Positions 535 to 58,149 are shown, counted from the first letter of the stretch. The stretch: 64,000 nucleotides of DNA from Paragordius varius (GCA_964247055.1 OZ176059.1:3162001-3226000), one strand, 5' to 3'. The notes: generated by a model from the sequence alone, not told the origin. Translations and numbers: made by a program.

Positions 535-3500
535 TTTTATAATTATTAAACGCAAAATCTAAAATTGGTAAAGTAATTTTTTCGCGCGCCATTTTTGTCA
601 AATCAGCTGTTTTTTCTTTTTTTTCAATCAGCTGAAGAACCGTGTTACTGAGAGTGCTACTTGAATTCTGGAAAAATCGATAAAATAAAAAAACTAACAA
701 ATTTTGAATAATAATAATTTATTAAAATTAATTTTAATTTAATTATTTAATTTTTTAAATAAATATTTTTATTAACTTTTATTTTTATAACTTTGAAAAT
801 TTTTAATTTTTTTTTCTAATTAAATAATTAAAAATAATTTATAATATTTGGAAAATTATCAAAAAAATTAAATTAATTTTTAAAATTTAAATATTTTATA
901 TATTATTATTTAATTTAATTATATGTTTAACAAAATAATATTTATTATTTTATTAATTTTTATTAAAAAATTTTAAATTTTACTAAAAGTGCTGCCCATA
1001 GAATTCTAGAAAAATCGAAAAAATATTAATAACAAATTTTTAATATATTAAATTTTTATAATTTTAATTATTTTATATTATTTCAAATTATTATTTATTT
1101 ATATTTAATTTTTGAAAATAATTTTATATAAAATATTATATAAATTTAAAAAAGTTTTGAAATTTTATTAATAAAAAGCATGTTTTTCAGTCGTAGATTC
1201 TAAAAAAATATATTTATTAATAAATTAATATTTTAATTAATAATTTTTTAATTATAAAATGCTATATTTATATATATTAATACAAAAAATATTTAGATTA
1301 ATATGATAAATAACATTCTAATTAAATTTAAATAAAATTTAAAAATATTTTAGAAAAAATAAAATAAATAAATTTTAAATTAAATTTTAATAAAATAAAA
1401 TTTTTTTATTTTATATAAAAATTTAATGTAATTAAAATAAAATAATTAATAAAAATTAAAATATTTTTTTTTAAATCTAAATAAATTACTTGACAACCAT
1501 CAAATAAAATTTCTAAAACAGCTGATTGGCGATCAGCTGATTTTTCTGGCATTGAAACAATGTTGCCTTCCGAATCAATAAACTGTAAACTTTCGCTTTC
1601 TAAAAAATATTATAAATAAAAATAAAAATTAAAATATGTATTTAATTTATTTAAAAAAAATAAAAAAAATAAAAAAATATAATAAAATATATAAAAAATA
1701 GTTTAATAATATAAATCAAAAATTATTAAATAATAAATAATTGAATATTTAAATAATAAAAAAAAATTTATAAAAAAGTATAAAAAAATTGTTTATAAAT
1801 AATATAAATACTAAATTTAAAAATAAATTTATAAAAAAAAATATAAAATAATTCTTTTAAAATTTAATAAAATCAAATAAATTAATTACTAAGAAATAAT
1901 TATTTATATATATATATATATATATACATTTTTTAATTTTAAATATTTTTATAAATTATTATTTAAAAAATAAAAATAATATGTTTAAATTTTTTTACCT
2001 GTATTTAAACAATTAAATATAAAAGTTTGTCGAATCTTTGAACTCAAAAGCCTTAAAAATCTCAGCTGGATTTCGAAAATTGGAGAGGGCGTATTCTGAT
2101 AACTAAACTAAAGAGTAAATTAAAATAAATTAATTAATATATTTTAATTATATTAAAAAAATTTAAAAATGAATAAATATATAATAAAAATAAAAAATAA
2201 AAAAATTAAAAATTAATATATATTAAATTAAAAAATAAAAAAATAAAAATAATTAAAAAATATTAAAAAATTATTAAAAATTGGAAATTAAACAATTAAT
2301 TTAGATAAAATTATAAAAAAAATAAAAATAAAATGAAAATAATTATTTTGAAATATATTTAAATTTTTAAATATAATTAAATTCATAAATTTAATATTAA
2401 TTAAGAAATATTAAATATTTGAATAAATTTGAAGAAAAATTGAATTTATATTATATTTTTTAAAAATATATTTTATAAATATAATATATACACTTTAAAA
2501 AATAATTTTTAATAAATTTTTTAGAAACAATTAATTAAAAAATATATAATTTTAAAATTATAAATAAAATCAAATGAAATTTTTACAATTTATTAATATA
2601 ATTATTATTTAATATAAATAATTTTTAAAATATATATTTTTAATTACAATAATTTTATTTTAAAGGACAATATTTTATAAAAATTATTTTAAATAAATAA
2701 AATATTTTTTAATAAATTTAAATATTTTAAGAATTAAATATAATACCATAATTTTTTAATTAATTCAATTAAAAATTTAATTTAAATATAAAAATAAAAA
2801 TATTAATTTAAATATTATATAATAAATTTGAAATATTTATCAATTAGTTTTAATATTTATATTTTTAAATTATTTTTTTTATAAATTAAAATTATTTTAA
2901 ATAAAAATTAAAAATTATTTTTTTATATTAATTATTTTTGGTAATTATTTTAAAAAATAATAATAATATATATTTATATATATATATATATATTTAAAGA
3001 TTTTTAATAAAATTATAAATTATTTTTATAAATTTAAATAAAAAAATAAAAAAAAAATTTTAAATTTAATTTTAAAATAAAAAATACTTTCTGGCCGCCA
3101 TTTATTTCAGAAAACCATTTTTTATCTTCATGTTTCCAGGGAATTAAGGGCATCTAAAATAAAAATACTTGTTTATTTTTTTTTAAATATAAAAAATTAA
3201 TAAATAAAATAATAATAAATAAATATATATTTTTTAAAATAAAATTATTAAATTTATAATAAATTTTTTTTAATATTTATAAAAACAAATTAATTAATAA
3301 AAGCAATTTATTTTATAAATATTTATTTTTTTTATTTATATATTTAAAAAATAATTTAAAAATTTAAAATAAATAAATAAAAAATTAAAAAAAATAATAT
3401 TGAATTATATTTTTATTATTATTTTAAATAAAATATATATAATATTAATTTTATTTCTACATTGCATTTAAATTTTTTGGAAATATTAAAATTAATTTTA

Positions 3501-56014: not shown

Positions 56015-58149
56015 CTAAAAAATTAATTAAATTTAAATAAAATTGTTAAAATAAAAAATAAAATTTATAAATATATATTTAAATTAAAAAATTATGATTA
56101 AATAATATATAAAAAATGTAAAATATATAAAATTTAAAAGATTATATAAATCTATATTTTTAAATTTATATTTTAATTAAAAATAATTTGAATATAATAT
56201 ATTTTAAATTAAAAAATATAAAATATATAAATTAAATAATTAATTTAAAAAGTAAATTATATTAAAATAAAAATTTATGAATAATTACTTTATTTTTAAA
56301 TGATTTATAAATATTAAATAAAACTTTGAAAAAAGTAAAATATATTAATTAGAACTTAAATTTTATTTAAATAAAATTTAAAAAATATTTTAAATTAATA
56401 TATATATATATGATATTTATTTATAATATAATTAAAAAATTTAATAAAATTTATTAATTTTGAATAAATATTATTTTAATTAACTATTAATACAAAAAAG
56501 TGAATTATATTAAAAATTAATAAATCAATATATGAAAAGAATTTTAATTAAGTAATAATTTTAAATAATTTTTTTATGAAAAAATAAATTTTGTTAATAA
56601 TTTATAAATATAATATTAAAAATAATTAAAATTTTAAAATTAAAAATTATTATTTAAAATTGATTCAATTTTTTTTTAATTCTATAATTTAAATATAAAG
56701 TAAAATATAAATTTGTTAATAATTTAATAAATATATATATTTAAACATATAAATTTTTTAGAAATTATTTAATAAAATTTTTTAATAAATGAATATTTTT
56801 TAATTAAAATTACCTTTTCCCGAATCGATTGAAAAATATATTTTCGAAATTAATTTTATTATTAAAAAAATATAAAATATAAAATATATTAAAAAATATT
56901 AAAATATTTAATATATTATTATATAAATATAAATATTATTATTTATTTTCTTCAAAAAATATTATTATTTTTATTTAAAAATTTATAAATAAATTAATAT
57001 TTAAAATAATTTTTGATTTTTAATATAAATAAATAAAAACAAATATTTATTTATTTATTTTAATTAAAACTGTTAATTTCCGGATTTTTATAGAATAAAT
57101 ATTTTTTAAAATTAAAATAAAAAATAATATAATTTTAAAATTTAATTAATATATTTTTAAAATTTAAAGATAAAATATAATTTTAAAATTATCTAAAAAA
57201 ATTTTTAATTAATTTTATTTAAATTAAAAATTAAATTAAAAAATTAAACATCTGTTTTTTGTAGAACTCTTAGAGTTCAACGAAAAGGTTAATGATTTCT
57301 AGATAATTTTATTTTTTATTATTTTATATTTATTTTTTACTATTTTAAAAATTATTTTTTTTTTAAAATTTTATAAAATTTTATTAAATCAAAAAAATAT
57401 AAATTAATATATATTTTTAATTTAATTTATATAAAATAAATATTTTTCTTTAATTACTTAATTTTAAAAATATTATTTTATTTATTTTAAATTTAAATAA
57501 TTGTATTTTTTAATGTTAATTCAAATTTAATAAAAGCTATTTTAATTTTATTTAGAAATTATTATTTATTTTTAAAATTTTAAATTTTATTTTAATATAA
57601 ATATAATTTGCAAATAATATATATGTTTAATAAACTACATAATTTAATTTTTGAAATTTTTTTATTTTATAAAATATTTACAATTATTAAAAAATATTAA
57701 GTTTTAATAAAATATCTATAATATAAATTTTAAAGTATTTTTATATTTTTAAAAATGTATTAATTTTTGTTATAAGTTAAAAATTAAAGTTTATTTATCT
57801 AATAAAACTAGATTTTTTTATTTTTTTATATTTAATTTTAATTTTAAAATATTATAATATAAATAATATTTATTTTTTTATAAACTTTAAATGATTTTAA
57901 TTTAATATTTATTTAAATATTTTAAAAAAAGCTGATATTATTATACTACATTATTTTTAAAATTTGCACAAATGAATATGAATTTTAATATTTATATAAA
58001 TATCTTTATGTCAGCTGTTTTTTAATATATTTTTTATTTTAACTTTAAATTAATTGAAATTAAATTTATATTATTTTATTATTTATTTTTTAATTATTTT
58101 ATAATAATAGCTTAAACTTAGGGAAAAAATATTTTTAGTTAAAATTCTA

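Follow-up and report, generated by a model that had tools for sequence, protein, structure and literature searches.

We describe here the strong over-representation of a short palindromic word, CAGCTG, in DNA of the hairworm Paragordius varius. The analysis covers one stretch of 64,000 nucleotides (GCA_964247055.1 OZ176059.1:3162001-3226000; hereafter, the window), which is 85% A+T, and the single gene examined in it, a fibrillar collagen on the minus strand. In this DNA a directional pressure acting at the DNA level keeps and multiplies the word, most of all in real exons, then in exon-derived intron copies, and then in some AT-rich intron DNA, and new sites arise through point change from near-cognates and through micro-duplication.

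Over-representation of CAGCTG in the window

A preliminary description of this DNA had put the number of CAGCTG copies at about 85, with fewer than one expected. The count is exactly 85, compared with a mean of 0.21 and a maximum of 2 in 100 dinucleotide-preserving shuffles of the window, 0.37 expected from base composition alone, and about 1.8 expected from local GC (±40 nt). The overall density is one site per 750 bp, and CAGCTG is by a wide margin the commonest of the window's hexamers with at least four G/C. After local-GC correction the excess is 47-fold overall, ranging from about 20-fold where G+C exceeds 40% to about 1000-fold in the most AT-rich DNA (many 2-kb blocks of the window have 6-13% G+C). 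Genome words of the HIP1 or uptake signal sequence (USS) type are over-represented at least 15-fold, a level exceeded here by the local-GC figure; relative to codon-based nulls, the excess in exons is 5- to 20-fold. The over-representation is real, and stronger than the preliminary description had stated. Our literature search found no paper linking CAGCTG with Nematomorpha. Genome words of comparable saturation are familiar from some bacteria, and we know of no description of one in an animal.

604 to 58017, no strand: all 85 CAGCTG sites, the first at 604 and the last at 58012

All but one of the sites (84 of 85) fall within the span of the collagen gene (about 600-55940), which fills most of the window and was verified as an animal-type fibrillar collagen. 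Its start codon lies at about 55,891, followed by N-terminal LamG/TSPN-like exons at 51.6-55.9 kb (a weak Pfam match), by about 37 real G-X-Y exons of 36-225 bp running from 45.5 kb down to 8.4 kb, many of them of 54 or 108 bp as in the classic pattern, and by a C-propeptide at 0.6-8 kb (Pfam COLFI, E = 5e-14 and 3e-5), an exon of which aligns to the C-propeptides of human collagens I and III; the gene ends near 600. The introns hold tandem “echoes” of exon ends, a Chapaev-like transposon, an array of CCGG-containing repeats and short satellites, and a further satellite lies upstream of the gene at 58-64 kb.

The sites have largely independent origins. An in-register comparison of flanks (±30 nt) sorted the 85 sites into 79 groups, thus excluding a single decayed repeat family, the origin that the preliminary description had set against its own proposal. 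Some local copies do derive from exon echoes and from 18-nt micro-duplications, which is in keeping with the idea that the sites are not independent at all, but remnants of a decayed dispersed repeat, footprints of a transposon, or artefacts of library or assembly. We give this idea almost no weight, and it is largely refuted already. A dispersed repeat or miniature inverted-repeat transposable element was ruled out, since the copies have no common flanks. Excision footprints of the Tc1/mariner type (TA-CAG-CTG-TA) were rejected because only 4 of the window's 40 TACAG half-sites are in the word and no full TA-CAGCTG-TA decamer occurs, and a Tn5 end-dimer artefact (GACAGCTGTC) because GACAG flanks are found at only 2 half-sites. 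Furthermore, in-frame translation at the sites gives sensible collagen, COLFI and TSPN-region protein, and 87-91% of the sampled words of the searched stretch occur in contigs of two public runs that may themselves be the source of the assembly.

The word in coding sequence

Nearly half of the sites are coding: of the 85, real exons account for 41 (G-X-Y exons 14, globular ends 27), 42 are non-coding, and 2 straddle an exon end. Exons carry about one site per 127 bp, versus about one per 1,400 bp elsewhere. Taking as a coding opportunity every di- or tripeptide able to spell CAGCTG through synonymous codons, we found that 41 of 48 such peptide contexts do so, even though the codons required are minority codons. 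All 14 opportunities are realised in the collagen exons (PAG 6, SAG 5, TAG 1, QL 2), and 27 of 34 in the globular exons, the last exon included. Under synonymous resampling, 1.7 sites are expected in the collagen exons, where 14 are observed, and 5.2 in the globular exons, where 25 are observed (1.2 under codon-order shuffling); none of 2000 trials reached the observed counts. The excess thus persists in the window's gene under codon-controlled nulls, a kind of comparison proposed in the preliminary description.

Coding use of all three frames had also been reported. All three are indeed used, but very unevenly, in the ratio 32 (xCA GCT Gxx) : 8 (CAG CTG) : 1 (xxC AGC TGx). The rare third frame requires Ser-Cys or Ser-Trp, so that tolerance of the protein filters where the word can be placed. 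Occurrence in several reading frames as well as in non-coding DNA is also a property of HIP1- and USS-type words. Peptides able to spell the word make up 5% of globular-exon positions, about five times our rough estimate for ordinary proteins (about 1%), and none was found in the 404 codons of the neighbouring transposase. The pressure on the word enriches SA[D/V/G], TA[D/V], PA[G/D/V] and QL in the protein. Since codon choice is overridden and the possible contexts are nearly filled, the pressure acts on the DNA and the protein follows, as had been proposed from the sequence. The individual readings given earlier (three G-S-A within 8420-8563, I-S-C at 48676, and SAD, TAD, TAV and QL elsewhere) are all present. 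Selected exons that carry the word, with the single site in the rare frame, are as follows.

52236 to 52496, minus strand: N-terminal (TSPN/LamG-like) coding exon, 261 nt long, whose 6 sites encode SAD, DQL, PAD, TAD, SAA and SAD
53605 to 53747, minus strand: coding exon with 3 sites (TAV, PAV, SAD), of which the one at 53705 lies within a 16-bp perfect palindrome
8420 to 8563, minus strand: G-X-Y exon of the collagen in which G-S-A-G triplets, spelled TCAGCTGG, recur three times at intervals of 18 nt, an 18-nt micro-duplication
7389 to 7535, minus strand: C-propeptide-region exon with 3 sites (SAD, TAV, SAD), whose intronic echo at 7630-7680 keeps 2
3917 to 4026, minus strand: COLFI exon (Pfam E = 5e-14), in which the word spells G-S-A-V versus G-C-N/K-L in human collagens I and III
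48676 to 48681, minus strand: the sole coding site in the third frame, ATC AGC TGT, I-S-C

The Cys of the “PN-G-C” motif of human collagens I and III is Ser in the hairworm collagen. The heptamer GTTGCCA abuts CAGCTG four times, as for example in GTTGCCAACAGCTG (7478-7667), both in the C-propeptide-region exon, where it reads V-G-N-K, and in its echo; it is half of an RFX X-box-like GTTGCC...GGCAAC.

Some copies touch splice sites. Two collagen exons end in ...CAGCT|gtaaa (40621-40626 and 23821-23826), the word overlapping the 5' splice site, and exon 1 ends in CAG|GTGATT (55745), where it is CAGGTG that overlaps. We rejected a general link with splice sites: only 3 of about 40 exons have E-boxes in the 70 nt that follow the 5' splice site, and the sites that straddle an exon end number 2.

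The distribution between coding and non-coding DNA also bears on ordinary tissue-specific regulation, that is, on the sites being MyoD, Twist or E-protein E-box enhancers of one highly expressed muscle or matrix collagen gene, with nothing genome-wide about them. The non-coding sites do cluster at both gene ends and at 33.8-35.0 kb, as series of CAGCTG and CAGGTG, and intronic sites are few in the middle of the gene. Nevertheless, with nearly half of the sites coding and saturating the contexts available to them, we regard this explanation as very improbable.

Anatomy of the word

The unit is a two-fold symmetric word of 10 bp, A-[T/A/C]-CAGCTG-[A/T/G]-T, with the core form A-W-CAGCTG-W-T. The commonest decamers are ATCAGCTGTT (16 copies), ATCAGCTGAT (16), AACAGCTGTT (8) and AACAGCTGAT (6), so the usual flanks had been given roughly correctly; literature searches on these decamers returned nothing relevant. 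At position -2, A is found in 67 of 85 sites (79%) and T in only 3 of 85, T being about 12-fold depleted against a background of 40%; at position +2, T is found in 69 of 85 (81%). Position -1 is T, A or C, and position +1 is A, T or G. These symmetric flanks are alike in exon-like and AT-rich DNA, and in AT-rich contexts they extend further, with A abundant 5' of the word and T abundant 3' of it. Combinations at ±1 (T..A 22, T..T 17, A..A 12, A..T 12) are near the products of the single frequencies, and 43 of 85 sites are non-complementary there, the two half-sites varying largely independently, as they would in a site for a homodimer. The half-site seldom stands by itself: the full word accounts for 57% of the window's ATCAG pentamers.

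The preliminary description had also noted many CANNTG variants. This holds for CAGGTG/CACCTG, with 34 copies versus 0.75 expected (45-fold), but much less for CATCTG/CAGATG (13 versus 4.2) and CATATG (23 versus 11.7), which are only weakly enriched. Among the CANNTG variants, strong enrichment is thus confined to CAGCTG and CAGGTG/CACCTG, in agreement with an E-box having a CANNTG core and a GC centre. Flanks of the form A-N...N-T accompany 62% of the CAGGTG/CACCTG copies in the gene span, compared with 17% in the background.

A symmetric word with independently varying half-sites, informative flanks and a tolerated centre variant is the pattern of a dimeric DNA-binding protein. It is unlike that of a hairpin, which would need complementarity at ±1. 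The same non-complementarity, together with the other palindromic hexamers, which match or fall below Markov expectation, leaves the general palindrome-perfecting repair that had been suggested earlier unsupported; on these grounds we also rejected any general preference for palindromes.

Another possibility is a function at the RNA level, in which the self-complementary copies would pair with one another in AU-rich pre-mRNA or mRNA as stems containing G/C, looping out long introns or stabilising the message. Per unit length, exons hold about ten times as many sites as introns, 84 of 85 sites are inside the transcribed span, and predicted folds do pair copies with one another. There are also 16 neighbouring pairs of sites 14-25 nt apart, with none closer; this is a weak excess over the 9.7 of a null that preserves clustering (null maximum 19), and four of the pairs are 18-nt coding duplications. 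Fold z-scores are modest (-2.2 and -1.4), pairing at half of the sites would involve only 6 bp plus ±2 owing to the mismatch at ±1, and the intronic transposon and CCGG array are transcribed too, yet lack the word. One-off variants compatible with G.U pairing show no sense-strand excess (4 versus 6), and with this absence of strand asymmetry and the weak z-scores, pairing tolerant of G.U was rejected. We consider an RNA-level function improbable.

Gain, loss and direction of the pressure

Under AT drift a neutral CAGCTG should decay to TAGCTG, CAACTG, CAGTTG and CAGCTA, counted here on both strands. These AT-ward one-off neighbours number 21 versus 85 intact sites, or 10 versus 57 when full flanks are required. 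Such a scarcity of decayed forms indicates a directional pressure and not a relic, and the neighbour counts and flank groups together bear out the earlier suggestion of a directional process, as opposed to the decay of one repeat. The per-position odds of C versus T (or G versus A) are about 28, where about 0.2 would be neutral, an excess of about 140-fold. If positions are treated as independent, these counts imply a directional pressure equivalent to a scaled coefficient, 4Nes, of about 5 per G/C position.

Retention is not enough, since the density is beyond any plausible ancestral composition and coding opportunities are saturated; sites must also have been created. Protection of C from AT drift, proposed earlier as a mechanism, is therefore insufficient by itself given one site per 127 bp in exons, and a gain from CACCTG can be seen directly. 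It occurred in the first of two echo families that we aligned, both with homology running through the word.

9300 to 10640, minus strand: echo family of the exon at 9042-9140; the real exon and three echoes have CACCTG, and one clade of three echoes has CAGCTG
13600 to 15650, minus strand: exon with CAGCTG (G-Q-L-G; 13,648) and four intronic echoes with CAGTTG or CTGTTG and non-consensus G/C flanks
33800 to 35000, minus strand: tandem exon-end echoes including the 5' splice site, each followed by CAGCTG, CAGGTG and CAGCTG about 13 nt apart, some decayed
4040 to 4850, no strand: AT-rich intron DNA between echoes of the COLFI exon, with 7 intact sites and several relics (TAGCTG, CAACTG, CAGCTA)

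Confinement of CAGCTG to one clade of the 9042-9140 echoes (support 84/87) points to a single gain, by a C-to-G change, from CACCTG; the copies of this clade are now 68-74% identical in their flanks and have kept the word. The real exon stays CACCTG because its sense reading is ACA GGT, in which the Gly codon cannot change. The pressure does not restore every near-cognate, as the four echoes of the 13,648 exon keep CAGTTG or CTGTTG. Inside exons, 18-nt micro-duplications multiply the word.

Intronic tandem echoes of exon ends with their splice sites were observed at 9300-10640, 14090-15650, 33800-34800, 4300-5050, 7630-7680 and 48300-48345. Several echoes of the 13.6-kb exon stop abruptly in (TA)n runs.

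Repeat DNA without the word

As the preliminary description had noted, the transposon, the CCGG array and the satellite contain no copy of CAGCTG. Over their 10.8 kb about 47 would be expected from the site density of the rest of the window at matched GC, and with a fourth small array added (49 expected) the probability of finding these repeats empty is P = 6e-22. They likewise have no CAGGTG/CACCTG and only 4 one-off words.

48900 to 50700, plus strand: Chapaev-like transposon in an intron, 1.8 kb; 0 sites versus 9.0 expected
30600 to 33760, no strand: CCGG (AAACCGGTTT) array, 3.2 kb, 31% GC; 0 CAGCTG versus 18.9 expected, and 0 CAGGTG/CACCTG
58100 to 63950, no strand: satellite upstream of the gene, 5.9 kb; 0 sites versus 19.4 expected

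Because arrays are not independent samples, and the elements may be young, this emptiness does not discriminate between selection acting on host genes and a universal drive that works slowly.

The CCGG array, in a collagen intron, has its own recurrent words, ACCGGT 28 times and AACCGG 35 times, partly with an 82-bp period; its palindrome AACCGGTT is what we take to be a Grainyhead/CP2 site. For the genome as a whole, the repeat share of about two-thirds is a figure from the report on Gordionus montsenyensis.

A candidate reader and its main rival

We favour, with some hesitation, a reading in which the word is recognized on duplex DNA by a homodimer of the E-box type (basic helix-loop-helix, bHLH; AP-4/“E-box1”), with host genes under pressure to accumulate copies (“more is better”). 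Each subunit of this candidate reader, of the class A bHLH or bHLH-leucine zipper (bHLH-ZIP) type, would read A-W-C-A-G. Each added site would be favoured, either through selection for occupancy of the gene body or through a transmission bias caused by the bound protein. Occupancy may in turn mark or open host genes in a genome of 90% AT, which is a guess on our part. A bHLH-type protein was among the mechanisms listed in the preliminary description, and it best fits the anatomy (symmetric flanks, half-sites, CAGGTG), although the coding saturation is atypical of such proteins.

Several points weigh against this reading. E-boxes would be expected in promoters and enhancers rather than in coding sequence, where 41 of the 85 sites lie, and the sites of ordinary transcription factors do not fill coding exons to this extent (1 per 127 bp, with 85% of synonymous opportunities taken), a behaviour that is more drive-like. 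Perfect palindromes of 16-22 bp surround 5 sites versus 0.8 expected, a surplus not foreseen if the word were purely a protein-binding site. Flank preferences could also come from a methyltransferase or repair enzyme that acts as a dimer. The whole basis is a single gene. Finally, we take the nearest specificities to be those of AP-4 (Cropped) and the Drosophila “E-box1”, presumably with the consensus AWCAGCTGWT (Ohler motif 5/AP-4), which literature searches did not confirm. The extended palindromes include the following, of which the first reaches slightly beyond the G-X-Y run of its exon into the preceding sequence.

45447 to 45468, no strand: perfect palindrome of 22 bp with CAGCTG at its centre, some 20 bp of it in a collagen exon (G-P-A-G-P-R)
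21716 and 27675: further 16-bp perfect palindromes on CAGCTG

The main rival is a system like HIP1, in which a CAGCTG-directed methyltransferase (of the PvuII N4-methylcytosine type or other) or a mismatch-repair or conversion process biases repair or transmission. Near-cognates would be converted and intact sites restored in long-resident DNA, with no benefit needed at each site. Such a position-blind drive predicts nearly saturated synonymous opportunities, gain against the AT bias is observed, and the emptiness of the transposon and satellite could reflect their youth. The hairworm word agrees with published descriptions of HIP1 (PMC5861425, PMC4390886) in its density of 1 per 750 bp, in being 20- to 1000-fold in excess, in occupying several frames and in its effect on peptides. 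Against this, restriction-modification enzymes such as PvuII read a strict hexamer, whereas here the flanks two bases out are informative and CAGGTG is co-enriched with like flanks. CAGTTG has been left unconverted in intronic echoes, and one-off neighbours are not below composition expectation. For HIP1 itself, moreover, the published conclusion is selection and not biased repair (PMC5861425). On balance we consider a drive of this kind unlikely.

Other features of the gene

In the collagen exons (8420-45464), third positions of Gly and Pro codons have almost no A/T preference (GGT 90, GGC 102, GGA 102, GGG 81). The adjoining introns have 6-10% G+C, resulting in a very sharp compositional step between exon and intron. 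A 21-bp tandem repeat, ACAATTCAAATTCACCCTCGA, forms two arrays of opposite orientation (25682-25783 and 25961-26040) beside the collagen exon at 26058-26201, and units similar to it are found at 55040-55440, near the first exon.

Implications and comparison with known systems

Beyond the window, it is conceivable, if rather doubtful, that this is an animal nuclear genome with a HIP1/USS-like word, AWCAGCTGWT, that a drive acting genome-wide or self-marking selection has multiplied in host genes, but not in transposons and satellites, strongly enough to rewrite codons and amino acids across the proteome. If so, the word would be an identity mark of host versus mobile DNA, for which only bacterial examples have been described to date. 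Were the pattern genome-wide, this would be the first animal known to us with a short palindromic word near saturation in its genes and visibly editing its proteins, and it would offer a tractable system for the question raised by HIP1 and uptake sequences of how far DNA-level pressure, whether its source is a binding protein, a modification or biased repair, can override coding constraint. Codon and amino-acid statistics, gene finders and selection tests on hairworm proteins would then be biased by the word, and its absence from transposons would provide a simple marker separating host-derived from mobile DNA.

Uptake sequences (USS and DNA uptake sequences, DUS) and Chi, by which bacterial genomes mark themselves, occur about once per kilobase, at tolerant coding positions, are scarce in foreign and mobile DNA, and spread by transmission bias. 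The hairworm word resembles them in its density of about one per kilobase, its presence in coding sequence and its scarcity in mobile DNA; unlike it, they are asymmetric words acting through DNA uptake or RecBCD, and we know of no comparable machinery in animals. The periodic A/T clusters (PATCs) of Caenorhabditis elegans germline genes, a gene-body DNA signal thought to license expression in a repressive genome, are likewise a DNA-level signal spread through host gene bodies, but they are intronic and not coding, and consist of a phasing pattern and no word.

Within ecdysozoans, CAGCTG is an established housekeeping core-promoter element of Drosophila, “E-box1”, used in broadly expressed genes (PMC8842121, PMC1779564). 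This element (Ohler motif 5) and the class A bHLH/AP-4 (Cropped) E-box have in common with the hairworm word the CAGCTG core, two-fold symmetry as expected for a homodimer, and a related CAGGTG/CACCTG variant. The Drosophila element, however, peaks just upstream of transcription starts, at 1-2 copies per promoter, whereas the hairworm word is spread throughout gene bodies, reaches its highest density in coding exons and determines both codons and residues, a protein of this type being a candidate reader only. In the same phylum, hairworm mitochondrial genomes are reported to be enriched in hairpins, with inverted repeats embedded in protein-coding sequence (PMC10380579). The likeness lies in inverted repeats inside coding sequence; the mitochondrial repeats are long and variable, unlike one fixed nuclear word that extends to 16-22 bp at only 5 of 85 sites.

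In behaviour, the closest analogue of the hairworm word is the bacterial HIP1 (GCGATCGC), a cyanobacterial palindrome 15- to 300-fold over-represented within and between genes, for which selection versus biased repair or methylation has been debated (PMC5861425, PMC4390886). Both are short G/C-rich palindromes that occur within reading frames as well as between them and amount to roughly one site or more for each gene. HIP1 differs in being bacterial, with cognate orphan methyltransferases and documented conservation between genomes; the hairworm word lies in an animal nuclear genome with introns, and its flanks and centre variant suggest a reader resembling a transcription factor.

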